Positions 1,191 to 62,871 of a stretch of 64,000 nucleotides of DNA are shown in pieces; within the stretch, counting starts at the first letter, position 1; the number at the start of each line of letters is the position of its first letter. Both the position numbers and the translations under genes were made by a program. This DNA is from Neoconidiobolus thromboides FSU 785 (Eukaryota; Fungi; Entomophthoromycota), in NCBI GenBank assembly GCA_025603075.1, contig MU626327.1:1-64000 (forward strand), written 5' to 3'. A model generated the notes under the pieces. It did no database searches. It saw only the letters and a program-made list of their open reading frames with translations, and was not told the DNA's origin.

Positions 1191-1288
1191 TAGGGATGTA
1201 TTTTTATATTCAAATTTCAGTGATAGTTTTTCCATTTAAATAATGCTTAAAAGATAGAAAAAGTAATGAAGCCAAAAAAACACCCCTG
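1191..1288 (+). mobile_element. ~100-bp TA-flanked MITE, copy 1
   Basis: TA-tagggatgtattttt...aaaaaaacacccctg-TA, with the family core recognisable. Confidence 0.85.
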
Positions 1289-1559
1289 TATGTATTTATC
1301 CAAATTCATATTGGACTATATAAAATGATACTTATTTTACTACATTATATTTCATCAAATCAATTATTTCTGTAATGAGCTTTGAAGAAAAGAATGATTT
1401 TGTAGAGAGAGTAGTATTAGTGAAAAAAATATAATGAAGTAACAGATATCCGGCTTTTTTTGAATAGACAAAGTGTGGAACTTATACTATCAATATTAAT
1501 AACATCCATTTATAAGCAATTTGAACTTTAAAAAAATATAATAGATTAATATAAAAAAT

Positions 1560-1900
1560 GAAACATGTCCAAATACATCAAGCAAACCTAAATGATTAGC
1601 TCATAAATTTAAATATTTACTATCCCTTACCTTATCTAATCCTCGAGGTTATTGTCAATATTTCAGATTTCCCAATGTTCCTCAAAATTTTTATTATTTT
1701 TACTGGTTTAATCAGTTCATAAAAGCTTTACAGTCTTCCGCTTTGGGCTTTTAAACATCCCCATATCAACCACTATTCCTTCCTTGTAAATCGATAGAAA
1801 GTACCATAGAAGCAGGGACCCTAAGTTACTTATCATTGATTTCATAACTCTTCAAAGGATAGTAAACAGTTGGACTTGCTACTTGATCTTACAGAAACGT
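1560..1900 (-). mobile_element. Possible degraded Tc1/mariner transposase relic (or a lone MITE TIR)
   Basis: Minus strand reads YW*NV...SKSN, then IWGCL about 45 codons later, similar to Tc1 W..V.(F/W)SDE.K.N...VWGCF. The tggggatgt codons also equal the MITE terminus. Confidence 0.3.
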
Positions 1901-2036
1901 TCTACCAATAGTTTAGTTATATCTTTAGTATTATATATATGCTTTATAGTTAACAAAGCATTCAAGGTTAATTTATTTGAGATAAAAATAAATAAAATAT
2001 TTTGTTATTTAATTTTATATAAACTTTATTTTTATA

Positions 2037-2136
2037 TGGGAGTGTTTTTTTTGATTTCATTACCTTTTCCATTTTTTAAACACTATTTGAGCGAAAGGAT
2101 TGCTAGTAAAATTCTTAAATCAAAAAGACGTTCCCA
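2037..2136 (-). mobile_element. MITE copy 2
   Basis: TA-tgggagtgttttttttgatttcattac...cgttccca, reverse orientation. Confidence 0.85.
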
Positions 2137-2424
2137 AATACTGATGCCACTTCCGCTATTGGATCGATCAAATAAAGTACGAACTTAGTTTTTAATAACC
2201 TCTCCTTTGAATCTTAAAATACCACTTAATAAAATAAAATAATGCTAGATAGAAATATACCCAGTAAAAAGCTGCTATTAAGTATTAAAGATGGCATTAA
2301 AAAAGTATAAAGGATACAGTTAGTTCAGCTATCGTTAACATACAAAAAGAACTTAAAGTAAAGCTTTTAATTACATAAAAATATTAAAAAGAAAAGTGAT
2401 GATTAAGTATCTAATTTAATATAT

Positions 2425-2523
2425 TGGGATGCATTTTTTTGCTTAAGAATTATACTAACAATTTTTCCACTCAAGCAATGCCTAAAAGATGAAAAAAGTA
2501 ATGAAATCGAAAGAATACTTTCA
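2425..2523 (+). mobile_element. MITE copy 3 (degenerate right end)
   Basis: tgggatgcatttttttgcttaagaattatactaacaatttttccactcaa... Confidence 0.75.
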
Positions 2524-3793
2524 TCATAAATTAAACGAAACTTAAATTTAAAATTTAAAATGCTCAATATTTTTGAAAACATAAGTATAGAGCTCTTTTA
2601 TGCTTCCGAAATATAGTGATAAACTTATGAAAGGAAATTTCGAAACGCTATGTATTTAAATATTTATAACATATTACAACTAAAACACAAAATATATATT
2701 AGCATTAAAACATTGAATTCAGTAAACTTTCTTATAATAACATAATATATTTTTAATCAATTAACTAGATAGAAGGCATCCATCTCAAGGAAACTAACCT
2801 TGTAATAGAAACACTAACGTTGCTTCATGCGGGGAATTAATAGTATGTTATAAATATTAAATATACTTTTTTAGTCTAAATAAATGAGCGAAGAAAGAGA
2901 TATCATATCAAGCTTAAAGTTAATCTTAAAAAAACTGATCAATTATTTTGTTCTAATGTAGCTATATCATTTTCAAATATTTAAATTTATTAACATTTCA
3001 AAAGTATAAACTATTTTATAAAAAGTAAAATAAACTTTAGTATTATACTTCTAGAAACGTTAGAACATACTTTAATCTAATTGAGTCGGACTATCTTTTA
3101 AACAGGAGCATTGTACATAATGATTCTCTTCAATGACATTTAGAAAAGATTTGGGTTTTAATTCTCTCTGACATCTACTTGAAAATTTTTTTAACTTTTA
3201 CCGTATATATTTACAAAAGAAGCAAATTAACTAAAATGCAATAAAACTTAAACAAACAAAAATGATAAATAAAATAAAAGGTTTTTAGAAAATGTTAAAT
3301 TTAATATTTTTGTTTCCATTGCCTTAATACTTGAAAACAAGTTATAAAGGATCATTGTTAGTCTTAATCATAAAGCTTGGGCTCTAATGGACAAACATTC
3401 TATTAAAGTTAGAAAAGTTATCTGATAAACTAATTATTTGCAAAATATTATCATTTAAGCAGCAAAGAGCTCAATCAAGGCATAAAAGCCTTGATTAAGT
3501 CAGCAAGTTCTTTACTATATTAATATCAATCCCCTTCCTAAATTAGAATTTAACAAAAATGCCCTTTTTTAGCTCAGTGATTTATTTCGATTTGCATAAA
3601 AATAGAAAAATTGTTAACGAGTACTAAAACAAGTAAATGCGTTCTAGCATTTTTTTACTTTCTTATGCTTAATTACTGAAGTTTTATTATCATTAAAATG
3701 CATTTCTGTACCTTTTATTTTATATGTATAACTCAAAATAAGCTACAATAGAATAGCACTATATAAAGCTAAAAGGAAAATAAGAAATCAATT

Positions 3794-5541
3794 ATGAAAT
3801 TAAACTCAAAAATGAGAATAAGGAGTAGAGTAGGTTTATTAAAATCGAAACTAGATGACATTGATTGTACGTTAAATAAGATATTTCAACAATTGGATAC
3901 TTATTCGAATTTAGAACTTAAACAAAAAATAAACGGTAATTAGTTTATTATCTTTATAGTGTTTGATTTAATCTAATTTAATTTTTAGACTATCTAAAAT
4001 GGCTTGAAAAAGAATTCACAATAATATATCGAGAGAAGAGATATAGTAATAAAGAAATTCAAAAAAAGATCACCCAACTTGAGATTATATTACAAAGAAA
4101 TCATAATCTTGATATTTTTTCAAAGATTTCAATGACTAAGATAGCATTGAGAAATAGCAATATAATAGGAGCATATCAACCTTATGGTCGATTTTTAGAA
4201 CAGGGTTCTGTTTTTTTCTTGAATGTTGTAGATCCATATAATTTATGGTTTAACGAACTCACTTTAAGGGAAATATTAATAAGAAAAGAGCCCAACATAT
4301 TATCTTATACTTTAATGGCACTACTTGCTCGCTTTACTCTTTCACATAAAGGTATAGCTTATAAAGAAATATATGGGAAATCTTTACAAGGAGTAAAAGC
4401 AACCTTACATCAGTGTTATTCAAATCCAAGCTACAATCATGTAGTAGCTTTAGGATTATTATGTTATATCAGTTTGTCACATTATAATTTTAATCTTGCT
4501 AAACAACATCTTTTGAATGCTATAAGAATGGCTCAATGCTTAAATTACGATATTGATAGTTTTTCATTTCATATGATAAATGTTAATTGTACAAGATATG
4601 ATGAGTTACTACGAGGTAGAAGGGTTTGGAAAATTTTATATCTTTTCTATTTAGTTCTTTCTTCTCGTATTCTAAATATGCCAGTCATTAAATTTGAAGT
4701 CAAAGATATCTTACAATTTTTTAGAAAAAATCAAAAAAAATATTATAACAGTAATAGAGAAATAAGCTACAAGGCCATCAGTGAAGTTTCATATTTATAT
4801 ATCAAAGACTTCATTGAAATATATATAAAAATATCAATTCACATGCAACAAATAAAAGAAACTTATAAATCAGTTAAAGATTTTTCAAAGATACCTACCA
4901 ATGCTTTGATTTTACCTCAAAAAGAATTTATAAATTGCTTTACTATAATGTATAACTTAATTCAGGATCAAAACTTAATAAAAGATGAATGTGAATATGA
5001 TAGGCAAGAATTAATTGAAAAAATCAATGATTATGAGTTTAATTCTAGAAGGTATCTTAAATTAATGATTCATTATACTAGTATAGTACTTTATTACCCA
5101 TCAGTTATGATTTATCCACAACCTGTTTTATTCGAAAGAAGAGAACTAAAATTACTGTTTCATCACGCTAATCAGGTAATTATTTATTGCTTAAACATTA
5201 GCTTAGATAATAAGATGAGTTATAAGGATTCCACTAAAAGGCATAAATTCCAAGCTAATATTCACATACCTTTTTACTACAAGCTTTGTTTTTGTTTTTT
5301 TATGCTTGCTAACCTATTACATCATGCTTCGAGTTTATGTAAAGAAGACATGTGGATGATTGATGAATCAAAAGTAAAATGTATATTATTAGTTAATGAA
5401 CTCATTAGTGTATCAAAATCTAGGGATAAAAGATATGTAAATGATGCTACTAATGCATTAAATCAAATTAGATGTTGTATTTATCGATTTCAGTTGCCCA
5501 AAGAGTTTATAGATGAGATAATAGTATGTCTTAATCAATAA
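3794..5541 (+). CDS. Fungal TF middle-homology-like family member B, join(3794..3935,3989..5541), 564 aa
   Basis: Exon 1 (MKLNSKMRIRSRV...) aligns with the N-terminus of paralog E. A 53-nt GTAAT...CTAAT...TAG intron restores the frame into DYLKW and the 469-aa ORF. Confidence 0.85.
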
Positions 5542-5635: not shown

Positions 5636-5734
5636 TGGAGATGTTTTTTGTGTTTAAGAGTTTTACTAACAATTTTTCCACTCAAATAGCGCTTAAAAAA
5701 TGAAAAAATAATGAAATTAAAAAAAACATCCCCA
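5636..5734 (+). mobile_element. MITE copy 4
   Basis: TA-tggagatgttttttgtgtttaagag...ctcaaatagcgcttaaaaaatg...aaaacatcccca. Confidence 0.9.
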
Positions 5735-7323
5735 AATGGTGATTATTTTATTACTAATGTTTAATTGATTTTAGAGTGTTTAAAAAGGTTTAGAAGAGTG
5801 TTTAAAATAATATATCGAGAGAAGAGATATAGTAACAATGAAATCCAAAAAAGGAGTTATCCAGTTTGAGATTGTATTGTAGAGGAATCATAATTTTGAT
5901 GTTATTTTATTACTTTGAATGACTAATATAATATTGAGAAATGGTAACATCATGACAATCGAGCACCCCTATGATCAATTTTCAGAATAAGGCTCTACAT
6001 TTCTTCTTGATTTTTGGTCTCTTTAACTTATGGTCAAATGAATCTGGATTAAGGGCAATTTTAATGAATAAAAAACCCAATATATTATCCTACACATTAA
6101 TTGTTCTTCTTTCTCGTTTCGCTCTCTACATGATAGTATATCTTATAAACAAATTTATCGAAACACTTTGCAGAATAAAAATAGTTTTACCCCAATATTA
6201 CTCCAATACGAGCTATAGCTATGTGATAGTTTTAGACTTATTACCTTACATTAGTTTATCTCATTTCAATTAAAATCTTGCTAAGTGTTATTTTTTAGAT
6301 GTTGTAAGAACGGATTAATACTTAGGATATGATATTAACGATACTTCTTTTGATAGGGTAGATATCACATATATTAGATGTGACAAATTACCTCGATGCA
6401 GAAAGATTTGGAAAATTCTTTACAATATACATTTCTCTCATCTTGTATTCCAGATATGCCTTTTGTTAAATTTGAAATCAAGGATCCTTTACGAATTTTA
6501 ATAGAAAGCAAAGCCAAAACAAACACAATATTAGTAAAAAAGCAATCTACAGACTAATAAGTAACTACCCACATTTAAATACTAAAGCTTTCACCAACAT
6601 AAATATAAAAATTGAAAGATACATGAAAAAAAGGAATAAGAACTTACGAAGCATATAGCGATTATTCTAAGATACAATTCAATGGTTTAATTTTATCTTA
6701 AAGCAAAATTGATAGCTGTTTAACTATTCAATAAATATAATCAAAGATCGAAAGTTGACGAGAGGTGAATGTGATTAGAGTAACAAAGAATTAAAAGAGA
6801 AAGTAAACGATCATGAATCCACTTTTAAAAGATACTTTAAAGTATCAATTCAACATTGTATTATAATACTATATTACCTATCGGTTATGATTTATTCATA
6901 GTTTGTTCAATTCTATTTTATTATGCTGACTAAGTTATCACTTACTGTTTGAATATTAACTTATATAATAAGTTAGATTGTAAGGTTTCTTCTAAATTGA
7001 AATATATTAATCCTAACTATAATTCTTAAATTAATATAAATTTAACTTTTTATTATCAAGTGTACTATTCCTTTTTTGTTCTTATTACTTTATTAAATCA
7101 AGCATCAGGTTTACAATTGGAAGATATACCGATGATTAATGAATTAAAAACAAACTATTTATTATTACTCAAAGATCTTGATAAGGTATTTAAATTTAAC
7201 AATAAAAGATGTGTTAACGATACTGTTAATGCTTTGAATCAGATTAAACCTTATATTCATCAATTTCACTTATCATCAGGTTTAATAGAAGAGATAACAA
7301 TATATTTCAATTATTTATATTGA
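5735..7323 (+). pseudogene. TF-like family pseudogene P1 (exon 1 missing, many stops and frameshifts)
   Basis: Collinear with gene B from the intron onward (tatatcgagagaagagatatagtaa is shared). Only ORF fragments 5971..6273 and 7060..7323 remain. Confidence 0.85.
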
Positions 7324-10498: not shown

Positions 10499-10539
10499 AT
10501 GTATTGAGAAGAGAATAAATAATTTATTTTTGTACTTTA

Positions 10540-10752
10540 TTATTTTATTATTTTGTTATTTTTGTTATTTTTTATTAGTAAATTATTATTATTATTTTTA
10601 TTTTATTTTTGTTTTTTTATTTTTTTATTTTTTTATTTTCTTATTTTTTTATTTTTTTATTTATTTTTTTATTTTTTTATTTTTTTATTTATTTTTTTAT
10701 TTTTTTATTTATTTTTTTATTTTTTTATTTATTTTTTTATTTTTTTATTTAT
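10540..10752. repeat. T-rich imperfect minisatellite (TTTTTTTA / TTTA units)
   Basis: Directly visible tandem low-complexity tract. It explains the spurious F/Y-rich ORFs here. Confidence 0.9.
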
Positions 10753-10841
10753 TTCCTGAGAATAAAAGAATAAATCCGTAACTATTAATTTTTTACAGGG
10801 ATAAAAATTGTAATCAGCATAAAAATTCTAACAAGCATTGA

Positions 10842-11085: not shown

Positions 11086-14000
11086 ATGAAATTCTCAAAT
11101 AATACCACTTTATTACGACCGCTAATTCAATCTAGTATTCGTCAATCAACCCTATTAACTTATCATTTTAAGCCCAAATCAACTTCATTACTTACTACTA
11201 CCTTATTAAAATCAACATGTTCTATCCCTTCCCACTGTTATTCCACTTTAAAAGAAGTTGAATTTGCACCCTCAGATACTTGTACCTTAAAGAAATATAA
11301 TAAAGTAATGGTAATAGGCTCAGGTGGTTTATCTATTGGACAAGCAGGTGAATTTGATTATTCAGGTAATTATTATTTATTTATTATTAATTAATAGAAA
11401 TATATAAGCTAATACTCTTTCTTTCTTTCTTTCTTTTTTTTAGGTTCACAAGCTATTAAAGCATTAAAAGAAAGTAATGTATATACTATACTTGTTAATC
11501 CGAATATAGCTACTATTCAAACTAGTGAAAATCTAGCTGATGAAGTTTATTTTACACCAATAACTTTAGAACATGTTAGTAAACTTATTGAATCTACGAA
11601 ACCAGATGGTATATTATTAACTTTTGGTGGTCAAACTGCTTTAAATTGTGGTATTCAATTAGATCAAAGTGGGATATTAAATAAATATAATGTTGAGGTG
11701 TTAGGTACTCCAATAAATACTTTAATTTGTAGTGAAGATCGAGAATTATTTGTTAAGGCATTAAATGAAATTGATATACCAGTAGCACAATCTACTGCAG
11801 TAGAGACAGTTGAAGATGCTTTAAAAGCAGCCTCTGAAATAGGATATCCAATTATTATACGATCAGCTTATGCATTAGGTGGTTTAGGATCTGGATTTGC
11901 TAATAATGAATTAGAATTGAAAACATTAGCTACTCAATCTTTAGCATTGAGTTCTCAAATATTAGTTGAAAAAAGTATGAAAGGATGGAAAGAAATTGAA
12001 TATGAGGTTGTAAGAGATAAAGATGATAATTGTATTACTATTTGTAATATGGAAAATTTCGATCCATTAGGTATACATACGGGAGATTCTATAGTAGTAG
12101 CACCTTCTCAAACACTTTCAGATGAAGAATATCATATGTTACGTACAGCTGCTATTAAAATTGTTCGTCATGTTGGAGTTGTGGGTGAATGTAATGTACA
12201 ATATGCACTTAATCCAGAATCATTAGAATTTAAAGTCATTGAAATGAATGCACGATTATCTAGATCTTCAGCATTAGCTTCTAAAGCCACAGGTTATCCT
12301 TTAGCTTTTGTAGCAGCTAAATTGGCATTAGGATATACATTACCTAAGTTAAAAAATTCAGTAACAAAGGAAACAACTGCTTGTTTTGAACCTTCATTGG
12401 ACTATATTGTTACTAAAATACCAAGATGGGATTTAAATAAATTTCAAGGAGTTAATAGACAAATTGGTAGTAGCATGAAGTCAGTTGGGGAAGTGATGGC
12501 TATTGGTCGAAATTTTGAAGAAAGTTTACAGAAAGCTATTAGAATGGTAGATCCAAGTTATCCTGGATTTCAACCTATTAATTTACCAGATGGTCAAAAT
12601 AAACAGAAATTAGAGGAACAACTAAAAAATGCAGATGATAAAAGAATCTTTTATTTAGCAATTGCAATGATGAACTATAATTATACAGTAGATGAGCTAC
12701 ATGAGTTAACTAAAATTGATAAATGGTTTTTATATAAATTAAATAATATTTATAAACATTCAAAGTTATTAAATGAAATTTCATTCAATTCATTAACTCC
12801 TGAATTATTATTAAAATCAAAACAATTAGGCTTTTCTGATTTTCAATTAAGTCAAACTTTATTAGATAAACATCAATTATCAGAAGAGATTATTAGAAAT
12901 AAAAGATTAAAATATAATTTATTACCAAAAGTAAAAAGAATTGACACTTTAGCTGGTGAATATCCAACAAATACAAATTATCTTTATACAACATATAATG
13001 CTGATGAAAGTGATATTATATTTGATAAGAATCCTCAAAATACAACTTTAGTTCTTGGATCTGGAGTCTATCGTATTGGATCTTCAGTTGAATTTGATTG
13101 GAGTGCAGTAAGTTGTATTAATAGTTTAAAAGCATTAAATCATTCAACTATTATGTTAAATTATAATCCAGAAACAGTCAGTACTGATTTTGATCAATGT
13201 GATAAATTATATTTTGAAGAATTAAGTTTAGAATCTGTTTTAAATATTTATTATTTAGAACAATGTAATGGAGTAGTTGTCTCTATGGGTGGTCAATTAC
13301 CTCAAAATATTGCTTTAAAATTAAAACAAAATCAATGTAATGTATTAGGTACTGATCCAGAAGATATTGATTCTGCAGAGAATAGATGTAAATTTTCTAA
13401 TTTATTAGATGAAATTGATATTGATCAACCAAAATGGCAAGCCTTAACTACAGTTCATGAAGCTAAACAGTTTGCTAATAAAGTTCATTATCCTGTATTA
13501 GTAAGACCAAGTTATGTACTCTCAGGAGCAGCTATGAATATTGCTTATAATTCTAAAGAATTAGATTATTATTTATCATTAGCAACAGCCGTTTCACCAG
13601 AATATCCAGTAGTTATTACAAAATTTGAATTAAATTCAGAGGAAATTGATATTGATGGAGTAGCCCAAAATGGAGAGTTAATGTATCATGCTATTTCTAA
13701 TCATATTGAACCAGCTGGTGTTCATTCCGGAGATGCTAGTTTAATTTTACCAAGTTATAATTTATCGAATGAATCTAAACAAAAATTGAAATTAATATGT
13801 CAAAAATTAAGTCATAAATTTCAAATCTCTGGTCCATTTAACTTACAAATTATACGTCAATTAGATCAAAACAATAACGAAAATTTTAAAGTAATTGAAT
13901 TAAATTTACGTGCATCTAGATCAGTACCTTTTGTTTCTAAAGTTTTAGGGGTGAATTTTATTGAAAAAGCAACCCAAGCTTTCTTTAATTTGTTGGAGCC

Positions 14001-14586
14001 ACTTACTCCAAAACAAGAATTAACTTTATCAAAAAAACATTATTTTGGTGTCAAAGTACCACAATTCTCTTGGACTCGATTAATTGGTGCTAATCCTAAA
14101 TTAGGTGTTGAAATGGGTTCTACAGGGGAAGTAGCTGCTTTTGGTCAAGATCCGTACATGGCTTATTTATTAGCCTTGCAATGTTTAAATAATTTTAAAT
14201 TACCGAAAGAAAATGTATTTATTAGTTTAAATGAAATGAAGGAATGTAAAGAAGAAGATTTGAAATTAATTATTAATAGTTTTATTAATAATAATTTAAA
14301 ATTATTTACTTTAAATAAGGAATTAAGTGATCAATTTAAAGAGATTAAGTTATTAGAGAATGAAGAAGATTTAAAAATTAGATTAAACCCAATGGATTTA
14401 ATATGTAATTTAAATTCAAAAGCAGATTCAAATAATATACCTAGATTAGCAGTGGATTTGAACATACCTTTATTAAATCATCCCTCATTAGTCTTGTTCT
14501 TTGCCAAAGCTATTACTAAATATCCAGTTAAAAAACATCTAGAATTATTAAGTTTAAAACCATGGTCTTACTATTTGAAACAATAA
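11086..14586 (+). CDS. CPA2: Carbamoyl-phosphate synthase (arginine-specific) large chain, join(11086..11365,11444..14586), 1140 aa
   Basis: Contains KVMVIGSGGLSIGQAGEFDYSG|SQAIKALKE, EMNARLSRSSALASKATGYP and GVHSGDA. No CAD/ATCase fusion. The N-terminus is S/R/L-rich like a presequence. Confidence 0.97.
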
Positions 14587-14618
14587 AAATTATAATATTC
14601 TTTTTTATATATTATATA

Positions 14619-17358: not shown

Positions 17359-17458
17359 TGGGGTTGTTTTTTCTGGTTTCATTATTTTTCCGTTTTTTAA
17401 GCGCTATTTGAGTGGAAAATTTGTTAGTAAAATTCTTAAACACAAAAATACATCCTCA
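17359..17458 (-). mobile_element. MITE copy 5
   Basis: TA-tggggttgttttttctggtttc...aaatacatcctca-TA, 100 bp. Confidence 0.92.
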
Positions 17459-17556: not shown

Positions 17557-19350
17557 TCAATTTAAATGCTTATTAATCTCATCTATTAATCCTTTAGATA
17601 AACGAAATTGATGAATATAACGCTTGATTTAATGAGTTGTTGGCATCTCTAGCATGTATTTTATCATTGGATTTAGATATATCATATAGTACCTCAAGTA
17701 ATAATATATATTTGATTCTTGATTCATAGATCAATAATCTGTGTTCCGTTTGTAGATCGGACACTTAATATAATAAATTAACGAAGACAAAAAAGGAACA
17801 ATATAATTGACGATAAAAAGGTATATGAGTGTTCAGTTAAAATTGATGCTTAGGATCAAATTGATAAATTCTAGTAAAAATTTCATGGCTCATTTATCTA
17901 AACCTTTATTTAAGCAGTATATAACAATTTGATTGGTATGCTTAAACAGTAGCTTTGGTTGTAAGTTTATAAATCGAAAAGGTCATAAACAAATTAAAAC
18001 GTATGCGTAGTAAAGCGTAATAATAGTAATCTGAGTTAAGACTTTAATATACCTTTTAAAATCAAATTTATGATCATCAACTTTGTCAACTAATTCCTTT
18101 TTACTGTAATTCCATTCATCTCTTGTTAAGCTTTGATCTTTTATTAAATTTATTAATATATTTAGACAGTTTTTAAATCCTTTTTGAGGTAAAATCATAT
18201 CTCTGGGACATATTTCGGAAGATTCGTAATATTCTTTTGCTTTTTATACACGAGTAAATGTTTTTATATTTACTTAAATAAAATCTTTAGCGCATATATA
18301 TCGATACTCGTTCGTAGCTTTGTAGTTTTTTCATTGTTATCGCTAGACTTATTTTAGTTCTTTATGAAAAAATGTAGAATCTTTGACTTCAAATTTGATG
18401 AAAGGTATATCTGAGATACGAGCTGAAAGCACTGGATAGGTAAGATGTAGAGTTTTCTATATCCCCCTACCTAAAGATAGCTCGTCATATTCTATATACA
18501 TGTCATCAATATTATCAAATCAACCATGATTAATATTATATCCTGAACATTTAGCCATTCTTACAGCATCTAAAAAATATCGTTTAGCAAGATTATAATT
18601 AGAATAGGATAAATTAATATAAAATAATAGTCTTAAAACTACAACTATATAACAGTTCAGATTAAAGCAAAATTGGGGTAAAATTGCTTTTACTCCTTGC
18701 GAAGTATTTCCGTAAATTTGTATATAAGCTACACTATTATGTGCAAGAGTGAAATGAACAAGAAAAGCGATTAATATAAGATAATATACGGGGATGTGTT
18801 TTTTGTTTAAGAATTTCATTAACAATCTTTCCACCCAAATAGCGCTTAAAAGATGGAAAAAGTAATAAAACTAAAAAAATCATCCTCATATTGAGCTCCT
18901 TATTTGTCAAAATCTCCTTTGAGTTAATTTATCAAAGCATAACCTATAAGGATCTATAATTGTTTTGAAAAAAATGGAACCACACTCTGTTCTCACCACA
19001 TTACTATTTCTCAATGTCACATTAGCTATCAAGAGCGATGAGGCAGTATTAAACCTACGATTCCTTTATAGTATAGCCTCGAATTGGGAAACTTTTGTTC
19101 AGATCTCATCATTACTATGTATTTTTTTCCTTGATAAATTGCTTCATATATTTCAAATATCAACTAAATATCAATTAAAGATTAATATAGTATTGAAATG
19201 ACTACTGATTACTTTTTGCTTGAATTTAATATTTGAATTTAAATCTAGTTACTTAAATATGTTATTTAATATATAACCAATATTATTTAGCCTTAACTTT
19301 ATCAAATTCACTCTATTTCTTATTTTTCCCTTTTCTACTATCTTGATTAT
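17557..19350 (-). pseudogene. TF-like family pseudogene P2, interrupted by MITE copy 6
   Basis: Collinear with gene E along its length. ORF fragments 17983..18198 and 18520..18834 remain, with multiple stops. Confidence 0.85.
18789..18888 (+). mobile_element. MITE copy 6 (inserted in P2 coding sequence)
   Basis: TA-cggggatgtg...catcctca-TA. Removing the element plus one TA restores collinearity with paralog B. Confidence 0.95.
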
Positions 19351-20083: not shown

Positions 20084-20179
20084 TGGGGGTGTTTTTTCTG
20101 GTTTCATTATTTTTTCCATTTTTAAGCGCTATTTGAGCGGAAAGATTGTTAATAGAATTCTTTAAAAAATACATCCGCA
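20084..20179 (-). mobile_element. MITE copy 7
   Basis: TA-tgggggtgttttttctgg...aaatacatccgca-TA. Confidence 0.92.
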
Positions 20180-20205: not shown

Positions 20206-20302
20206 CGGGGATGTATTTTTGTATTTAAGAATTTTACTAACAAACTTTCCGCTCAAATAGCGCTTAAAAAATGGAAAAAATAATGAAGTCAAAAAACACT
20301 CC
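20206..20302 (+). mobile_element. MITE copy 8
   Basis: TA-cggggatgtatttttgtatttaagaattttactaacaaactttccgctcaaatagcgcttaaaaaatgg..., near consensus. Confidence 0.92.
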
Positions 20303-20620
20303 TATGTGGTATTATTTAAAAATCAGTAAACATTTTAATTCAAATTATTATAATAATATACTAGCAAACTATTTGTATTAAAAAATATAACGTAGCAAAA
20401 CAAGCAACATGTTTACCAGCAATTTTAATAATAAAAATAAAGTAATAGTGGTTTAAATATTAGTGAAAAATATTAGAGTATCTGCCATTACCTTTTTTTA
20501 CTTATTATTTTTCATTATTAAAATGCTCATTAAAATATAAAGATGCTTTGTTATTTTAAAACTGTTGATTTTCTTATCTAGATATTTATTAATATTATAT
20601 AGAGTTGTATTATATACTAG

Positions 20621-21083
20621 TGTAGAATCTGGCACTCAGTGACTGGAGTCAAAAACAGCTATTACCTGATTGATTATACTGTAAGTCGGAAGGTCTTAGT
20701 TTATGTGACTAAGATAGACTTGAATTGTGAAAAATAGTTCGTAATGGGTCACGGACTACGTAAAACAAATAGAATAGATAATACTAATGTAAAATCTATG
20801 TAAAATACTATCAAGAAAACTTAGTGGCTTTATTAAACGTTCGAGATATCAGGCAGTAATTGAGTCAAAAGCCTCAAGCTACTATGTTTTAGGATCTTTT
20901 TTCTACTTCGACAAGTATAGATACCAAAACGAGAGAATAATATTCTTTGAGATGAAGCTAAAAATTCTCATAGAAAATCAAACCAAGAATGTGGGATTGA
21001 TTTTCTCTGAACTCGAGAACACAACACCTTAGGCGATTGTTATGGTATAATCAACCATGGAGCTGACAAAGCGATGTTTCACA
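20621..21083 (+). mobile_element. Solo-LTR-like element, copy 1 (463 bp)
   Basis: TGT...ACA ends with a short inverted terminus (tgtagaatc / gatgtttcaca). Direct repeat of 61139..61600. Confidence 0.75.
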
Positions 21084-21108
21084 AAAGTTAACCAAAAAAT
21101 GAACTATA

Positions 21109-21143
21109 TAGGAATATATTTTTGTGTTTAAGAATTTTACTAG
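21109..21143 (+). mobile_element. Partial MITE (left third)
   Basis: taggaatatatttttgtgtttaagaattttactag. Confidence 0.6.
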
Positions 21144-21319
21144 CTAAAATAATAAAAGATAAGATTATCCAACCTTTAATATTAGTATCTTAAATAATAA
21201 TTGCCTATTTTTTATCACCTTGTTGTACTGGTTTTAATTTATCAACATTATTAATGTTAGTTATTACTTTCTTATTACAATACTACTTATAGTAAAACCA
21301 CATTTGTTAAAATTGTATA

Positions 21320-21420
21320 TGAGAGTGTTTTTTTTGACTTCATTATTTTTTCCATTTTTTAAGCGCTATTTAAACGGAAAAATTGTTAGTAAAATTCTTA
21401 GACACAAAAATACATCCCCA
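21320..21420 (-). mobile_element. MITE copy 9
   Basis: TA-tgagagtg...tacatcccca-TA. About 8 differences from copy 15 by eye. Confidence 0.93.
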
Positions 21421-22036
21421 TATATTATTTATATATATGCCATACTCTACAATAATCTTTTTGACAATACTAAACTAACATATTTATTTTTAGCTCTTCG
21501 ATATCATATTTTTTATTTAGGCAAGTTCAAATTTTTGGCTTCTTTATAAAAGTTGCCAACCTAGGTTTTACTAACTGGTGACACCTCATGTTTAGAAAAA
21601 AGTTGATCAGCTATATTTTTCATGTAAGCGTGTTCAAGGGAAATCGTTTGAAAATCAGTTCAAGTATATAGCTAACTAATACTCCCTCTTCTAAATTAGT
21701 CAGCTTCAATTTTGGTACAATATCTTTCCTTGAAAATACACTATTCTTCCCGTTATATTTGTTTTTTATCATATAGTATTTAATAAAAAATCATTTTTCT
21801 TATATTATTTAATTTTATACTTTTTACCACAAACTTATAAATCACTATTAATTCAAAACTATATTCTTAAAAAATGAGCTATTGGTGTTAAAAAATCATA
21901 CTTTAAACCTTACCATGTTAAAAAGGATTTTGCATAGACTAGCTTCTTTTTCTTCAGTATTATTACTCAGTCTTTTTAAAGGATTACATATTTGTTAAAA
22001 ACAAGATACTACTGAGACTATTAGTCGAGATGCATT

Positions 22037-22120
22037 TGGGGATGTTTCTGATCTCATTATTTTTCCATTTTTTAAGCACTATTTGAGTCAAAAGATTGTT
22101 AGTAAATTCTTAAAAAATAA
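22037..22120 (-). mobile_element. MITE copy 10 (one TIR lost)
   Basis: tggggatgtttctgatctcattatttttcc...agtaaattcttaaa. Confidence 0.75.
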
Positions 22121-22621
22121 AACTTAATTTTAAAAATATTGAAACTGATTTTCGAGAAATATAATTAAGCTTTTTTCATCTATTAGTGGCTAAAAAGTAT
22201 TCTATAAAAATACCTAGTACTCTTCTTCAAACAAGGATAATAGCATTACTATACTACCTTTATTTAAGGAATTGAAATAACATGAGTTAAGGAATTTGAA
22301 TGGTCTAAGCTTCATTTAGTTAAAGATAACAATGGTCAAAAAGGCTTGAAAAAATGGGTTATCTTCCCTTTCTATATTGTTTATCAATTTTTATACTAAA
22401 TAAAATACTTGCGAGTCATATGAATCTTTCAAGAATATGAAAAAATAGCCAGTACTTTACCTAAATGACATAAAAAAATAAACATTGCTTTTTAATAAGC
22501 AAAACAAAATTGATATAAACCAACTTATAAATTCTACCAAAAATTAATGATGTATATTAAAAAAGTGAAATATTGAAAACTATTTGAAATTTTATAATTT
22601 ATTGTAATAATATTACCAATC

Positions 22622-24739: not shown

Positions 24740-24838
24740 TGGGGATGTATTTTTATGTTTAAGAATTTTACTCAAATTTTTCGCTTAAATAGCGCTAAAA
24801 AAATGGACAAAATAATGAAGTCAAAAAAAACACCCCCA
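24740..24838 (+). mobile_element. MITE copy 11
   Basis: tggggatgtatttttatgtttaagaatt...aaaaaaaacaccccca, about 370 bp upstream of gene E. Confidence 0.9.
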
Positions 24839-25504
24839 AATAGTAAAATCGTTATCTAATCTTTTTTACTTATTTTATGAGGGTGAGGGTTTAAATATTA
24901 AATCTCAAATTGTTTAAATGGTATTAATAGACTGTATTTTAAATTTATTTTATCAACTGTTGTAATATTAAAAAGGCACAATATCAAATTCGGTCTTTAG
25001 AAATAGTTTATTCTACTTACTATCTCCGAATATTAAGGTTTAATATTATTTGTTTTATTCATAAATATACGCCATAAAAAAGCAATAAAAATTTCAAACA
25101 AATGCCAGGAGCATACAGGACACTCCTATATATTTATAGGCATTATTCTAAAAAATAATTGGCTATTACTAAATCTTACCAACAAATAATATATATTAAT
25201 TATTTACTTAAAAGTGTGCTTTGATATTTTTAAAAGTGTAGCCTCCAAAGATTGAGTTACTTTTTATGGAAGTAAATTAAACCTAATAAGTACTAATTAA
25301 TTTGAGTATTTCAAAATATATAACTGCATTAAGCTTAAATAATTAGGCTTTTAAAACAAAAATCAAATTTGATATAACAACTAGCTACCCTTCTGTTTAT
25401 TTTGGTTTAACTTTATTTCTCTAAGAGTTACAATATACTTTTAATTATTTTTATAGAAACAAGCCTAAAACTTGCATTATAAAATCTTCACTCTGAATTA
25501 GATA

Positions 25505-25598
25505 TAGACATGTATTTTTTTAAGAATCTTACTGGTACCCTTTCTACTCAAATAGCGCTTAAAAAATACAAGTGGCGAAACCAAAAAAAACATTCCCG
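25505..25598 (+). mobile_element. MITE copy 12
   Basis: TA-tagacatgtatttttttaagaatc...aaaacattcccg-TA. Confidence 0.8.
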
Positions 25599-26049
25599 TA
25601 TTAAATAACATGATATTTAAACATTAATTTCGAAGATGTTTATATAATAATAGCTTTATTTTCATATATTAGCATGGATCTAAACTTATATATTTACAAC
25701 CATTGTAGCTTTGAACCTATAAATCAATGTACTGATACAAATTTAAAGTTTGTTTATGATTATCAGTAGCTTATTATAGTTTAGTTTGACTCAGGTTTCA
25801 AAAAATCACTCAACAAAAGTATATATTTATATTATATTACCTTTATAGTTAATTAATTAAAATCCATCTTTTGACTTACATATAAAACTATATATCTATA
25901 TATTATTTTGGTTTTAATGAATCAAATATTTAAATATATAATTTATAAGTAGCTGACTATTTATCTAAATCAGTTGTTTATTCATTCATTCATTATCAAA
26001 TCAAAACTCTTTATTATTTATAACTATCTAATGAAAAGTCGTAATATAA

Positions 26050-28228: not shown

Positions 28229-28328
28229 TGGGGATGTATTTCTGTGTTTAAGAATTTTGCTAATAATTTTTCCGCTTAAATAGCGCTTAAAAGAGGGAAA
28301 AAATAATGAAGCCAAAAAAACACCCCCG
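28229..28328 (+). mobile_element. MITE copy 13
   Basis: tggggatgtatttctgtgtttaagaatt...aaaaaaacacccccg. Confidence 0.9.
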
Positions 28329-28710: not shown

Positions 28711-28807
28711 TGAGAATATATTTTTTGTTCAAGAACTTTATTAACGACCTTCCCACTCAAGTGGCGGTCACAAATGGAAAAAACGATGAAATTGAAAAAC
28801 ATCTTCA
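28711..28807 (+). mobile_element. MITE copy 14 (diverged)
   Basis: tgagaatatattttttgttcaagaac...atgaaattgaaaaacatcttca. Confidence 0.75.
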
Positions 28808-29569: not shown

Positions 29570-29670
29570 TGGGAGTGTTTTTTTTGACTCCATTATTTTT
29601 TCCATTTTTTAAGTGCTATTTAAGCGGAAAATTTATTAGTAAAATTCTTAAACACAGAAATACATCCCCA
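29570..29670 (-). mobile_element. MITE copy 15
   Basis: TA-tgggagtg...tacatcccca-TA, 101 bp. Confidence 0.93.
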
Positions 29671-29851: not shown

Positions 29852-29952
29852 TGGGGATGTATTCTTTTGCTTAAGAATTTTACTAACAATTTTTCCGCCC
29901 AAATAGTGCTTAAAAAATGGAAAAAGTAATGAAGCCAAAAAAAACATCCCCA
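29852..29952 (+). mobile_element. MITE copy 16
   Basis: tggggatgtattc...aaaaaaaacatcccca. Confidence 0.92.
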
Positions 29953-31010: not shown

Positions 31011-31111
31011 TGGGGATGTATTTTTGTGTTTGGGAATTTTACTAACAAATTTTTCGTTCAAATAGTGCTTGAAAGGTAAAAAAAGTGATGAAGTCAAAAA
31101 AAACATCCCCA
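31011..31111 (+). mobile_element. MITE copy 17
   Basis: TA-tggggatgtatttttg...aaaaaaaacatcccca-TA, with a near-perfect 15-bp TIR. Confidence 0.95.
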
Positions 31112-41282: not shown

Positions 41283-41902
41283 AGAATAACTAATATTGGT
41301 GAGAGTGACTTTTGTAATAGTGGTATTTTTCATTTAATATTAGTAACAAATAATAGCGCTTGGAGACTATTACTAAGTCCTAAACTTTTTATGAAATCAT
41401 TTAATCTCAGTTCACTTTCTCTGATTCTTATTAACAAGGACAGTAATAACTTCTAAGCTATCCTTTCCAAATATAATAGCTAATAATAAACTTTACTTTT
41501 TTTAATTTTTCAATTTTGATATGTTCTTTCGTACTTATGTTTTCGCATCTTTTATCCCATTTGATCCTTAATCTTAATATAAATGGAATAACTTTGTATA
41601 GTTAACTATCTTGTATTTAACCTTTATGTGAAATAAATATAAAGACTATGACTAAAAATCTGATAGTTAAGCATTAAATAATTAGAATGGAATAATCTAC
41701 CTCATTTCTGTCCATATATTAGCTATTTGAAACCTTTTTAAAAGATCTGAGCTACAAGGTATAAATGATAAAGGTCGCCTTCAAATTCGTATAAGGCTCA
41801 CTTCTAACAAGAAATTCAATTTATTGCTCAACTCAGTATTTCAAAGAATTAACATCGTTGGATAGAGACATATTTCATGAAATTTTTTTATAAAAAAGTA
41901 TT

Positions 41903-42000
41903 TAGAGGTGCTTTTTTGATTTCATCACTTTTTCCATTTTCTAAGTACTATCGAACAGAAAGGTTGTTAGCAAACTTTCAATACAAAAAATACACCTCCA
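41903..42000 (-). mobile_element. MITE copy 18 (diverged)
   Basis: tagaggtgcttttttgatttcatcac...aaaaaatacacctcca. Confidence 0.8.
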
Positions 42001-42792
42001 TTTAGATTACATTTTATAATGCTTAATACTGTCTTTGATTTACTCCCTTATAGAGAATGCAAACTTCAGCTAGTTCAGCAATAGCAAAAACCTTAACTGG
42101 GACATGAATAATACATAGTATACATATATATTACATTTATAACTGTTATTAATATATATCCATAATTGATTTAAAATTATATATACATGTTTTTTATACT
42201 TACATTTATTTATTCATTTTTTAGGCAATAAGATCTAAAAAATTACTAAAATATGAATTAATTAAACATTTAGTCAGATATAAAACTTGAAGCTTTGAAG
42301 GACTTACGCTTTTAAACATGATATAGCTCTAACACATACAATTCTAACTCTAACCCAGCCCTGATATAGTTTCAACTTTATAACTGATGTCAAGATGTTT
42401 TAAAATGTCGTCAGAATTTAATACAGTATTTTAAATTGGAAGTTGTTCATATATCTTCTAAATTTATTTTATTGATTTTTTAATCCAATTTGTATTTTCA
42501 AAATTTTATGTAAAAGCTTAATGCTTGAACAGTTGTTTAAACCGATCAGATTTTACCTTTAAAAAAGAATGATGTTTAAAAATTTTAACTTGGGCTAAAT
42601 ATTATAAGCATCTTATTAATAAGCTTCAACTTTAAAGCCCAATCATATGCTGCGCATATCTAAAATTAGTTGGACTTTGCTTAACATCAGCTTCAAAACC
42701 AAGTATTTTAGCCAATAGTGATAAGCTTTGCATTAATATAAACAAGAAATTAAAGCAATTTAAACCAAAAGTTTAACTTTTATAATTTACAA

Positions 42793-50504: not shown

Positions 50505-50587
50505 TGAGGATTTTTTTTAAGAATTTTGTCAACTTTTAAAATAATGCTTAAAAAATCGAAAAGTGATGAAACCAAAAGTATATACCA
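50505..50587 (+). mobile_element. MITE copy 19 (internally deleted, diverged)
   Basis: TA-tgaggattttttttaagaattttg...gatgaaaccaaaagtatatacca-TA. Confidence 0.75.
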
Positions 50588-50589
50588 TA

Positions 50590-50686
50590 TGGAGATGTAT
50601 TTTTTGTTTAAGAATTTTAATACAATCTTTCCACTTAAATAGTGCTTAAAAAATGGAAAAATAATGAAACTAGAAAAACACCCCCA
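50590..50686 (+). mobile_element. MITE copy 20
   Basis: TA-tggagatgtattttttg...aaaaacaccccca-TA. It shares a TA with copy 19. Confidence 0.92.
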
Positions 50687-53602: not shown

Positions 53603-53701
53603 CAGGGATGGATCTTTTTGTTTGGGAGTTTTACTAACAACCTTCCTACTTAAATAGCGCTTAAAAAATGGGAAAAATGATGAAATCAGTAAAACACCCC
53701 T
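53603..53701 (+). mobile_element. MITE copy 21
   Basis: TA-cagggatggatc...ttaaatagcgcttaaaaaatgg...aaaacacccc. Confidence 0.88.
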
Positions 53702-59985: not shown

Positions 59986-60084
59986 TGGGGATGTTTTTTT
60001 TGGTTTCATTACTTTTCTGTCTCTTAAGCACTATTTGAGTAGAAGATTGTTGACAAAATTCTTAAACAAAAAAATACATCCCCA
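59986..60084 (-). mobile_element. MITE copy 22
   Basis: tggggatgtttttttt...aaaaatacatcccca. Confidence 0.92.
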
Positions 60085-60331: not shown

Positions 60332-60425
60332 ATAAGTGTGTTTTAATTTCATCACTTTTTTCATCTTAAAGTGCTATTTGAGCAAAAAAATTGATAGAAT
60401 TCTTAAACGCAACAATACATCCCCA
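60332..60425 (-). mobile_element. MITE copy 23
   Basis: ...tttcatcactttttt...gtgctatttgagc...aatacatcccca-TA. Confidence 0.82.
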
Positions 60426-60609
60426 TATTTAATTATTTAATTAATAATAATTGGATAAAAATAAATCTAAAGTAAAAAAAGCATATTTTTAACTAATATT
60501 AAATTAGTTAGATAAAATACTTAGAATTTTTATAACTATTAAAATAGTATAATTTAAAAAATAAAAAGAGTAACGAAGCTAAAAAAACATCTATATATCA
60601 ATCATAATA

Positions 60610-60711
60610 TTGAGATGCACTTCTTTGTTCAAGAATTTTATTAATAATTATTTTAACCAAATAGCGCCTTGAAAAATGCAAAAAATGATGAAATCAAAAA
60701 AAACACTCACA
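60610..60711 (+). mobile_element. MITE copy 24 (diverged)
   Basis: TA-ttgagatgcac...caaatagcgcc...aaaaaaaacactcaca-TA. Confidence 0.8.
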
Positions 60712-60753
60712 TATATTAACATTTTTTAATTAAAAACTATTATTAAAAGTTAG

Positions 60754-60850
60754 TGGGGGTGTGTTTTTATGTTTAAGAATTTTACTAACTTTTCCGCTCA
60801 AATAGCGCCTGAAAGGTAGAAAAAGTGATGAAGCCAAAAAAACACCTCCA
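60754..60850 (+). mobile_element. MITE copy 25
   Basis: tgggggtgtgtttttatgtttaagaatt...aaaaaaacacctcca. Confidence 0.9.
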
Positions 60851-60964
60851 ATGATATTGCTTTTTATAATGTTATTAATCAAAAAATTTAAAAATAATAA
60901 GTCATAAGTTATTTTGAGCTATGTTTATAAATTTTGTAGCTGTTTTTGCTTTTTTACTAAAATA

Positions 60965-61063
60965 TGGAGGTGTTTCTTTATGTTAAGAATTTTACTAACA
61001 ATCTTTCCACTCAAATAGCGCTTAAAAAATGGAAAAATAATGAAATAAAAAAAGATATCCCCT
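60965..61063 (+). mobile_element. MITE copy 26
   Basis: TA-tggaggtgtttc...ctcaaatagcgcttaaaaaatgg...gatatcccct. Confidence 0.9.
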
Positions 61064-61138
61064 TATATTATTTTGAAAATGCTTATATAAATTTTAAACA
61101 TTTCGTAGTTGTTGTTTTCAGTATCATGATCTCTCAGT

Positions 61139-61600
61139 TGTGAAATCTGGTACTCAGTGTTTAGAGTCAAAAACAGCTATTTCTGGGTTGACTACACTAT
61201 AAGTCGAAAGGTCTTAGTTTATGCGACTAAGATAGACTTGGATTATGAAGAATAGCACGTAATAGGCTACAGACTATGTAAGACAAATAGAATAAACAAT
61301 ACTAATGTAAATCTACGTGAAATACTATTAAGAAAACTTAGTGGCTTTATTAAATATTCGAGATATCAGGGAATGATTCAGTTAGAAAGCCTCAACTAAC
61401 ATACTCTGCGAACTCTTTTATACTCTGAAAAGTATAAATATCAAAATGAGAAGGTAATATTGTTTGGGATGAAGCTAGAAATTCTCATAGCAAATCAAAA
61501 TAAGAACGTGGGATTGATTTTCTCTGAACTCGAGAACACAACAGCTTAGGCGATTGTTATGCTATAATTAACCATGGGACTGACAAGGCGATATTCCACA
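61139..61600 (+). mobile_element. Solo-LTR-like element, copy 2 (462 bp)
   Basis: TGTGAAAT...ATTCCACA termini. The flanks cagt and cagc look like a 4-bp TSD with one transition. Direct repeat of 20621..21083. Confidence 0.78.
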
Positions 61601-62047
61601 CAGCTAAGCCTATAAATAACTAGATTACTAATAAGTTTTTTATTAATTTTATCAAAATTAATTAGCTAAACTTATTTAATTGAGTAAAATAATGCTTGAA
61701 AAAAGCTTTTGCTTTGTCAAAAAAATATAAACAGCTAAAATACATAATAAATTAAAGAATATATGGGGATGTCCAAATTAGCTTCATTCTTTATTCAATC
61801 TTTAAATATTTTGAATTTTAAAGACTGCTTAAAATTCTATAAAAACAGATTCTATTAAAAAATAGGAGTATCCGATACAGTTTTAAATTATTTTATTATA
61901 ATTTATATTGTAACTTAGCTGAGTTTTTATTAAATTTAACAGATTCCCAGATTAGCAAGATTTTTACTAATACAAACTATATATTGACATTAATCAAAAT
62001 TATAGTGCCCAAATAAATATATGTCTCCATAAAACTTCATTAGAAAA

Positions 62048-62148
62048 TGAGGGTGTATTTTTTTAGGAATCTTAGCACTAATTTTTGCGCTCCAAATAAA
62101 TAGTGCTTAAAAAATAGGAAAAGTAATGAAACCGAAAAAACATCCCTA
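62048..62148 (+). mobile_element. MITE copy 27
   Basis: tgagggtgtattttttt...aaaaaacatcccta. Confidence 0.85.
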
Positions 62149-62168
62149 AATATTTACTGCTAACTACT

Positions 62169-62269
62169 TGGGGATGATTTTTTTGATTTCATTACTTTTT
62201 CCACCTTTTAAGCGCTATTTGAGCGGAAAATTTATTAGTAAAATTCTTAAACGTAAAAATACATTCCCA
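62169..62269 (-). mobile_element. MITE copy 28
   Basis: tggggatgattttt...aagcgctatttgagcgg...aatacattccca. Confidence 0.9.
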
Positions 62270-62787
62270 CTTTATATATAGGCAATATTGCAGGCTTACT
62301 ATCAAATAAATAAACTATTTTAATATTATAGTTAAATTATTAATATATCACTAATTTAATAAATAGCTTCATGGGAAAGGGTAGTTAGCCTTAAAACTAT
62401 AATTAATCATGCTTATATGATACAAGCAATATAGTAATAATTTTATTTATTATCATAATTATTTGCTCTTTCGCTACTTATTGACTTAAATATTAATAAT
62501 TTAAGTAACGTTGGCATTTGATAGTTGATTTTTATCATCCAATAAACTATTTAATTGCTTAATAAATACCGAAACTTTTAAATTTTATGTTATTTTTAGG
62601 ATAAGCTGGAGTTAATATTTTAATTTTCTAATTTTTTATAAACTTTATAACTTTAGTTGGGATTATGTCACTTTTTTTTTGATTTACCAGATACTGGATA
62701 ATAATATAGTTTACTATTATATTTAACGAAATATAAATACTTTTTAATATTTTATATTATTAATATTTTTTTATACTTCTGTTTTTT

Positions 62788-62871
62788 TGTATTTTTGTGT
62801 TTAAAAATTTTACTAACAAATTTTCCGCTTAAAAAATGGAAAAAACAATGAAGTCAAAAAAAATACTCTTG
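62788..62871 (+). mobile_element. MITE copy 29 (central hairpin deleted, left TIR lost)
   Basis: ttttccgct^taaaaaatgg: 11 nt (caaatagcgct) are lost between two cgct direct repeats. Confidence 0.8.

Follow-up and report, generated by a model that had tools for sequence, protein, structure and literature searches.

Among the described cut-and-paste transposons, the Sola superfamily combines a DDD transposase with a 4-bp target duplication, and Tc1/mariner elements always give a TA duplication (PMC10741241). In a survey of fungal cut-and-paste elements, Sola was recorded almost only in Rhizophagus, plus single cases, and Conidiobolus coronatus displayed only Tc1/mariner plus a few others (PMC5751038). 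Published repeat surveys of the group to which Neoconidiobolus thromboides belongs report only 'Unknown' classes, with no mention of Sola or of MITEs (miniature inverted-repeat transposable elements), and a comparative entomophthoralean genome paper mentions neither for N. thromboides (PMC11105155). Here, a stretch of 64,000 nucleotides of N. thromboides FSU 785, hereafter the window, was analysed. It covers positions 1-64000 of contig C70 (MU626327.1) in a 24.6-Mb assembly of 799 contigs, and it harbours a dense family of a short element with terminal inverted repeats (TIRs). With a probability of roughly 0.85, we consider this element to be a 99-bp MITE with a 4-bp target duplication, derived from or related to a 2.4-kb family which encodes a DDD transposase and displays Sola-like features. 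The MITE thus adds a further member to a type of element already known, and is not a new kind of system.

The initial annotation of the window had proposed a dispersed repeat family present in both orientations. This was confirmed with an nhmmer profile built from the window copies, which gave 29–31 matches in the window (29 copies or relics, 19 on the plus and 10 on the minus strand), starting with the one at 1192-1287 and closing with that at 62788-62873. With up to 3 mismatches allowed, a 31-nt core segment had nine matches in the window and none in 100 shuffles. In 330 kb of the genome that were read, 168 nhmmer matches were obtained, and both ends could be anchored in 122 of them. The majority consensus of these 122 copies defines the MITE proper as 99 bp running from GGGGATGT to ACAYCCCC; it contains no open reading frame (ORF) and is non-coding. 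Its TIRs are imperfect, with a length of about 14–17 bp and agreement at 12 of the first 14 positions of both ends, in line with the ~15 bp proposed earlier. The central CGCT-CAAAT-AGCG hairpin was also recovered in the consensus, together with the loose fold-back: with gaps allowed, the consensus and its reverse complement agree at about 66% of positions, and its minimum free energy as DNA is -10.7 kcal/mol (z = -2.5). Within the stem of the hairpin, G45 (G to A) and C55 (C to T) change independently (Fisher p = 0.44), so that there is no sign of selection on this structure.

The flanks of the anchored copies were decisive for the nature of the target duplication. The flanking 4-mers are identical in 82 of the 122 copies, against 37.7 on average, and never more than 53, in 10,000 permutations. 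Direct repeats of length 3, 5 and 6 fit just 5, 1 and 1 of the copies, respectively. ATAT/ATAT makes up 50 of the identical pairs, and the other 32 consist of ATTT (15), AAAT (7), TTAT (3), ATGT (2) and, once each, AAGT, ATAC, ATAA, ACTT and AAAA. The initial annotation had read the boundary as TA-(C/T)GGGG...CCCC(G/A)-TA and had concluded on a TA target duplication of the Tc1/mariner (Stowaway) type. According to this reading, the MITE would have T...A tips and would be mobilised by the Tc1/IS630-like transposases of the genome. It agrees with ATAT being the commonest flank, by which TA adjoins most copies, and at A-W-W-T targets it predicts exactly the same sequence as a 4-bp duplication. 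Empty sites and nestings at such targets cannot separate the two models, and therefore a test on the outer base of TTAT targets was used. When a T is found four bases to the left of the element, the corresponding base on the right should be A under 'TA plus T/A tips' and T under a 4-bp duplication. Genome-wide, TTAT...TTAT flanks were found 27 times and TTAT...ATAT flanks 3 times, which excludes 'TA plus T/A tips'. Similarly, matching pairs with a deviating outer base (ATAA, AAAA, ATAC and TTAT) were observed 6 times, compared to about 0.7 expected with independent tips, and the middle bases are often TT, AA, AG, GT or CT, where Tc1/mariner always shows TA (PMC10741241). The T and the A beside GGGG and CCCC, formerly assigned to the element, belong to the duplication. 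The target duplication of the MITE is 4 bp, with a strong preference for A-W-W-T and mostly ATAT. The preference extends weakly outwards, with A at position -7 in 83 and T at position +7 in 87 of the 122 copies, giving the weakly palindromic target A-N-N-[ATAT]-N-N-T. No TTAA flank appeared in the top-12 4-mer tallies or among the listed non-ATAT pairs of the 122 copies. An ATAT-flanked MITE can thus pass for a TA/Stowaway element, and the rare non-A/T outer bases alone discriminate between both.

Candidate partners of the Tc1/mariner type are nevertheless present in the genome, with at least 25 Tc1/IS630-type DDE_3 matches in intact open frames and 2 pogo-type genes. Moreover, three DDE_3 ORFs (in loci L005, L010 and L014) are bracketed by inverted MITEs, plus on the left and minus on the right, for which a rough estimate gives about 0.15 expected cases. 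Fourteen DDE_3 loci were read, and the scan of 12 neighbourhoods for inverted repeats revealed neither GGGG-type termini nor any other clear TIRs. The intact DDE_3 ORFs are 40–60% identical within groups, and about 25% identical between groups. A composite transposon, or a long-TIR autonomous element, made of MITE-bracketed DDE_3 ORFs was considered and rejected. No relationship exists between the bracketed genes (L005 and L010 are ~25% identical), and the one bracketing MITE with both ends anchored and matching flanks, L010 3915, has its own ATAT/ATAT duplication, so that the bracketing copies are best read as independent insertions. A tendency of the MITE to insert into the AT-rich DNA beside Tc1-like genes may lie behind them. 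The Tc1-like genes were also discarded as partner of the MITE, the ORFs being divergent, partly in tandem and, in the 12 neighbourhoods scanned, without matching ends. A mariner transposase (PF01359) gave no match in the genome, a weak negative since the control matched in no control genome. The proposed Tc1/mariner origin falls because the duplication is not TA, and we regard it as very improbable.

Some of the DDE_3 genes show a peculiar arrangement. Same-strand tandem arrays of intact DDE_3 plus helix-turn-helix ORFs (333–387 aa, 40–60% identical to each other), spaced by ~3 kb, were observed in L001 (C225:1-10000), L006 (C162:24700-34699) and L011 (C225:21500-29500). No TIRs were detectable for these ORFs, and the arrays resemble a gene family that has expanded, and has possibly been domesticated, more than they resemble active transposons.

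Two further superfamilies were evaluated as origin of the MITE and rejected. For piggyBac/Kolobok, the target is not TTAA, and piggyBac (PF13843) had no match in the genome, which is again weak since the control matched in no control genome. For PIF/Harbinger (Tourist), the 3-bp repeat accounts for far fewer copies (5/122) than the 4-bp repeat (82), and PF13359 had no match in the genome.

Insertion events were directly visible. The MITE at 18790-18887 interrupts one of three paralogues, whereas the two others are uninterrupted (23730-23980 and 32290-32540) and have 4 fewer bases at the insertion site (~23.85 and 32.4 kb). A paralogous empty site was thus obtained within the window itself. Three cases of a MITE nested in another MITE were also found, in which deletion of the inner copy plus 4 bp gives a gapless outer MITE; one of the targets is ACTT. 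Furthermore, a decayed copy of a long element, presented further below, has been invaded by two MITEs, at 62049-62147 (AAAT flanks) and at 62170-62268 (AAGT flanks). Based on the empty site, the three precise nestings and the matching flanks, the element is a mobile, high-copy, non-autonomous TIR element.

Alternatively, the repeats could be a structural or regulatory intergenic repeat, or a non-coding RNA family, spread by duplication or recombination. Their distribution has features in this direction. No overlap with an ORF of at least 300 aa was found for any of the 29 window copies, while such ORFs occupy 30% of the window (0.70^29 = 3e-5), which bears out the avoidance of coding blocks noticed at the beginning. 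The copies are mostly intergenic. One copy occurs per gene-sized interval, approximately, in parts of the window, and the fold-back potential given above would suit a structured repeat. The copy at 18790-18887 is located within the coding sequence of a decayed paralogue. The copies carry their own matching 4-bp flanks of variable sequence, precise empty site and nestings were found, both orientations occur, and the ends are common to a transposase-bearing element. Rfam gave no match at gathering score, and the central hairpin shows no compensatory change. A non-mobile repeat is therefore extremely improbable.

A long element sharing the ends of the MITE and encoding a transposase, for which a search had been suggested in the initial annotation, was found by all-against-all comparison of the ORFs in the 330 kb, where it appeared as a repeated coding fragment. 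The reference copy (L031:496-2941, contig C477) has a length of 2,446 bp, flanks ATAT/AAAT and TIRs of ~20 bp with GGGGWTGT tips; it begins with GGGGTTGTCCGAATTGG and ends with AATTCAAACATCCCC. Its frame is broken, with ~570 codons distributed over four pieces. Fragments of the long element were detected in 13 of the loci read, and also in the window on the minus strand (61765-61939 and 62300-62812). The window contains no intact transposase, as previously stated, and carries a decayed long-element relic at 61765-62812. Eleven long-element termini from independent copies share the same ends, and nine of them adjoin ATAT. In the whole genome, 178 long-type termini and at least 163 matches to the 177-aa transposase core were counted, most of the latter with stops; the longest open frames among these matches are 566, 415 and 381 aa. 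Most long copies are thus probably dead by now. The 566-aa frame lies on contig C11 near 77.1 kb, with a long-type terminus at 78327-78348, and this locus (~75.9-78.35 kb) may be a full-length copy of the long element. Further long open frames lie at C28:123908, C99:12494 and C142:43430.

The ends of both elements were compared by alignment. The 5' 45 bp of the MITE and of the long element are similar with z = 6.0, and the 3' 45 bp with z = 6.7 (32/45 identical, ungapped). This similarity is significant without the 8-nt tips as well (z = 4.2 for the 5' and 4.8 for the 3' end), and alignments of the ends in crossed orientation are not significant. As the ends are colinear, with the same tips and the same 4-bp flanks, the MITE looks like an internal-deletion derivative of the long-element family or of a close relative.

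The gene of the long element was characterised mainly through its homologues. No Pfam family was obtained for the transposase pieces. HMMER searches against 1.84 billion representatives gave 505 relatives, the best being 42% identical. Those with a name come from the Harpellales fungi Furculomyces boomerangus and Smittium angustum, where they are listed as hypothetical proteins. Alignment of 24–33 homologues revealed three nearly invariant aspartates in the motifs DFKEN, WxDxGxHF and HGKSxVDGHFG, preceded by a TDxCxxC motif. The transposase profile has no relative in the PDB by sequence. The AlphaFold model of the intact Smittium homologue (predicted local distance difference test score, pLDDT, of 89) has as best PDB matches the DDE transposases and integrases IstA, Mos1, MuA, TnsB, retroviral integrases such as that of the human immunodeficiency virus (HIV), and Hermes. 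On the basis of the motifs and of this confident model, the broken gene of the long element encodes an RNase-H-fold DDD transposase. The ESM-Atlas neighbours of the transposase are DUF7869 clusters from animals (score 0.95). Membership of DUF7869 was considered and not retained: next to these neighbours, it is supported only by sub-threshold matches, which 6 of 24 homologues showed with a best E of 5.6e-4, and DUF7869 (PF25273) had no match in the genome.

The homologue of S. angustum (PVZ96810.1, intact, 516 aa) is encoded in an element of 3,556 bp (L035:40-3595, contig MBFU01001123.1). Its TIRs, GGGTGATCCCAAAAG... and ...CAATTGGGATTACCC, match at 19 of 25 positions, its outermost tips are GGGTGATCCC... 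and ...GGGATTACCC, and ATAT is present on both sides. With the same transposase family (~35–40% identical in the core), GGG...CCC tips and ATAT flanks, it is an independent second case. It differs from the N. thromboides element in being longer, in having an intact gene and in a TIR sequence which diverges after the first bases. In the same locus (L035:1-3599), the contig sequence opens as ...AATTACCC-ATAT-GGGTGATCCC, and its end reads ...GGGATTACCC-ATAT, so that the 3' terminus of one copy and the 5' terminus of the next abut across a single ATAT. A tandem in head-to-tail order, a wrap-around of the assembly or a circular junction could account for this arrangement.

Taken together, a mechanism can be proposed for the family. 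The transposase would make a 4-nt staggered cut of the target, and cut-and-paste insertion would then duplicate the flanking 4 bp, the duplicated target being A-W-W-T, mostly ATAT, within the weak palindrome A-N-N-[ATAT]-N-N-T. The MITE would have arisen by internal deletion from the 2.4-kb autonomous family, or would be a close relative of it, and the transposase of the long element would bind to the ends common to both elements, mobilising the MITE in trans. Several observations weigh against this interpretation. Immediately right of the MITE, the first base deviates alone from A nine times (6 G, 2 C, 1 T) and its left partner once, an asymmetry which is not explained by a plain 4-bp model. 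At two MITE copies, the direct repeats are longer and shifted by one base relative to the element, with AAATAGTAAA on both sides at window 24741-24837 and TTATCTTA in L026 near 4682; these may be due to chance in AT-rich DNA or to occasional aberrant insertion. No intact autonomous copy was found among the long-element copies read. Beyond the 8-nt tip, the ends of the MITE and of the long element are just ~65–70% alike, and therefore the immediate parent of the MITE may be a different, possibly lost, subfamily. Finally, no Pfam family covers the transposase, and its DUF7869 matches stay below threshold.

The latter point leads to the question of the superfamily. Since both the 4-bp duplication and the DDD transposase are present, the family fits the Sola superfamily, a putative label drawn from these features. 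The transposase could instead belong to an unnamed DDD clade, distantly DUF7869-like, which independently makes 4-bp ATAT duplications. The lack of a Pfam family, the DUF7869 signals, the lack of a PDB relative by sequence and the near restriction of fungal Sola to Rhizophagus (PMC5751038) speak for such a clade. The two published Sola traits are found here (PMC10741241), and both the element size of 2.4–3.6 kb and the TIR length are within the reported Sola range, which makes a separate clade unlikely. If it were one, the present family would be its first recognisable representative, with more than 500 uncharacterised relatives in public data, including those in Harpellales fungi, and the clade would have given rise to a MITE population which is among the densest seen in any small fungal genome. 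Should the family indeed belong to Sola, the range of a superfamily hardly recorded in fungi (PMC5751038) would extend to zoopagomycete lineages, and Smittium would provide a related element that is intact.

The abundance of the MITE was estimated in different ways. A first look at the whole assembly gave 4,072 candidates. The strict pattern AWWT-GGGGATGT-N78-92-YCCC-AWWT matched the genome 781 + 799 = 1,580 times on both strands, and the reversed control 0 times. Scaling was done with 53 nhmmer matches per 11 strict matches, as obtained in 151 kb that had not been selected for MITEs, and suggests ~4,000–8,000 copies genome-wide, in agreement with the first-look number in order of magnitude. 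The MITE would hence make up perhaps 2–3% of the 24.6-Mb genome, for which correct masking and naming are needed. The earlier figure of about one copy per 2 kb holds as a mean for the window (1 per 2.2 kb); it does not hold as an even spacing, with a single copy between 31.1 and 50.5 kb. Anchored copies are 75–97% identical to the 99-bp consensus (median 87%). From this median, the copies appear moderately old. The family may be inactive at present. A 37-nt MITE pattern gave 0 matches in a metagenome scan, and the literature search returned no description of this MITE, in line with the proposal of a non-autonomous, possibly undescribed family. The features of the window are as follows.

1192..1287, plus: MITE copy of 96 bp, flanks ATAT/GTAT, both ends anchored (nhmmer 70.9 bits)
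2039..2136 (approximate coordinates), minus: MITE copy of ~98 bp, flanks ATTT/ATAT (nhmmer 85.8 bits)
2421..2523, plus: MITE copy with degenerate 3' end (nhmmer 75 bits, profile positions 3-106)
5637..5733, plus: MITE copy, flanks ATAT/AAAT (nhmmer 86.8 bits)
11086-14586: CPA2-like carbamoyl-phosphate synthase gene
17360..17457, minus: MITE copy, flanks ATAT/ATAT (nhmmer 94 bits)
18790..18887, plus: MITE copy in a decayed paralogue, flanks ATAC/ATAT (empty-site comparison with two paralogues)
20085..20178, minus: MITE copy, flanks ATAT/ATAT, head-to-head with the copy at 20207..20303 (nhmmer 85.4 bits)
20207..20303, plus: MITE copy, flanks ATAC/ATGT (nhmmer 97.4 bits)
21101..21144, plus: possible short MITE fragment (nhmmer E = 6.6e-5, profile positions 13-56 only)
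21321..21419, minus: MITE copy of 99 bp, flanks ATAT/ATAT (nhmmer 99.5 bits)
22034..22116, minus: 5'-truncated MITE relic (nhmmer 51.8 bits, profile positions 22-109)
24741..24837, plus: MITE copy, flanks AAAT/AAAT (nhmmer 90.3 bits)
25502..25601, plus: diverged MITE copy (nhmmer 67.2 bits)
28230..28327, plus: MITE copy, flanks AGAT/GGAT (nhmmer 99.7 bits)
28711..28807, plus: diverged MITE copy (nhmmer 45.8 bits)
29571..29669, minus: MITE copy of 99 bp, flanks ATAT/ATAT (nhmmer 96 bits)
29853..29951, plus: best-preserved MITE copy of the window, well suited as reference; 99 bp, flanks ATTT/ATTT (nhmmer 103.8 bits)
31012..31110, plus: MITE copy of 99 bp, flanks ATAT/ATAT (nhmmer 95.8 bits)
41900..42003, minus: diverged MITE copy, flanks AAAT/AAAT (nhmmer 67.7 bits)
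50508..50577, plus: MITE relic adjoining the copy at 50591..50685 (nhmmer 29.7 bits)
50591..50685, plus: MITE copy, flanks ATAT/ATAT (nhmmer 80.1 bits)
53604..53701, plus: MITE copy, flanks ATAC/ATAT (nhmmer 85.9 bits)
59987..60083, minus: MITE copy, flanks ATTT/ATTT (nhmmer 85.2 bits)
60332..60428, minus: diverged MITE copy (nhmmer 65.2 bits)
60607..60714, plus: diverged MITE copy (nhmmer 68.2 bits)
60755..60849, plus: MITE copy, flanks no longer matching (TAGT/AATG; nhmmer 89 bits)
60966..61062, plus: MITE copy, flanks ATAT/TTAT (nhmmer 80 bits)
61765..61939, minus: decayed long-element copy, 3' end (positions 2267-2446), ending in ...GGACATCCCC followed by ATAT (blastn to L031:496-2941, 81% over 182 bp)
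62049..62147, plus: MITE copy nested between pieces of the long-element relic, flanks AAAT/AAAT (nhmmer 68.3 bits)
62170..62268, minus: MITE copy nested in the long-element relic, flanks AAGT/AAGT (nhmmer 96.8 bits)
62300..62812, minus: same decayed long element, internal part (positions 1687-2193; C-terminal transposase frame; blastn 76% over 517 bp; tblastn with the L031 ORF piece, E = 2e-10)
62788..62873, plus: MITE relic without the central hairpin segment (nhmmer 51.5 bits)

About 40 genomic copies of the MITE are 88–92% identical to the reference copy at 29853..29951. The window as a whole has a base composition of ~25% G+C and, when judged by long bacterial-style ORFs, a low coding density. 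Assembly size, this base composition and a low repeat content agree with the description of N. thromboides in PMC11105155. Its recognisable genes are eukaryote- or fungus-like and code for the large chain of a CPA2-type carbamoyl-phosphate synthase and for a transporter of the major facilitator superfamily. A T-rich microsatellite with a period of 8 bp (~280 bp, 10500-10780, units TTTTTTTA and TTTATTTT) is located between an unknown ORF and the carbamoyl-phosphate synthase gene. Two paralogue families with three diverged members each (~70% DNA identity) were observed: one at 17600-19300, 22620-24375 and 31260-32870, the other at 1-1095, 4132-5541 and 5970-7320. Neither of them has a match in Pfam. 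The paralogue at 17.6–19.3 kb is disrupted by a MITE and by stops. A second repeat of ~300 bp, distinct from the MITE, occurs at 20792-21091 and 61309-61608 (81% identical) and also in L020:3859-4077; it probably represents a second repeat or transposable element family.

When compared to known systems, the MITE shares features with several of them. With Stowaway elements of the Tc1/mariner type it has in common a small size, AT-richness, a high copy number, short TIRs, AT-rich palindromic targets containing TA and a preference for non-coding DNA near genes. Stowaway elements duplicate exactly TA, whereas the duplication comprises 4 bp here, with TT, AA, AG or GT frequent in its centre. None of the Tc1-like genes scanned here had ends corresponding to those of the MITE. 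The piggyBac/Kolobok elements (TTAA) also duplicate 4 bp, an AT-only palindromic tetranucleotide, and have G/C-rich tips, the ends of piggyBac being CCC...GGG. They differ by the target, which is ATAT/AWWT here, and by their transposase motifs. Tourist and mPing elements (PIF/Harbinger) resemble the MITE by G-rich TIR tips, an AT-rich target and the massive amplification of a short internal-deletion derivative, and differ by a 3-bp TWA duplication. For Sola (Sola1-3; Bao et al., 2009, as summarised in PMC10741241), the likeness covers the 4-bp duplication, a DDD transposase with RNase-H fold and without a Pfam family, the autonomous size of 2.4–3.6 kb and the short TIRs, both within the reported range, and the occurrence of short non-autonomous derivatives. 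Two differences stand out: the host is here an entomophthoralean-type fungus, as opposed to Rhizophagus and the single cases of the survey (PMC5751038), and the MITE is extremely dense, with up to 1 copy per 2 kb in a genome of 24.6 Mb.

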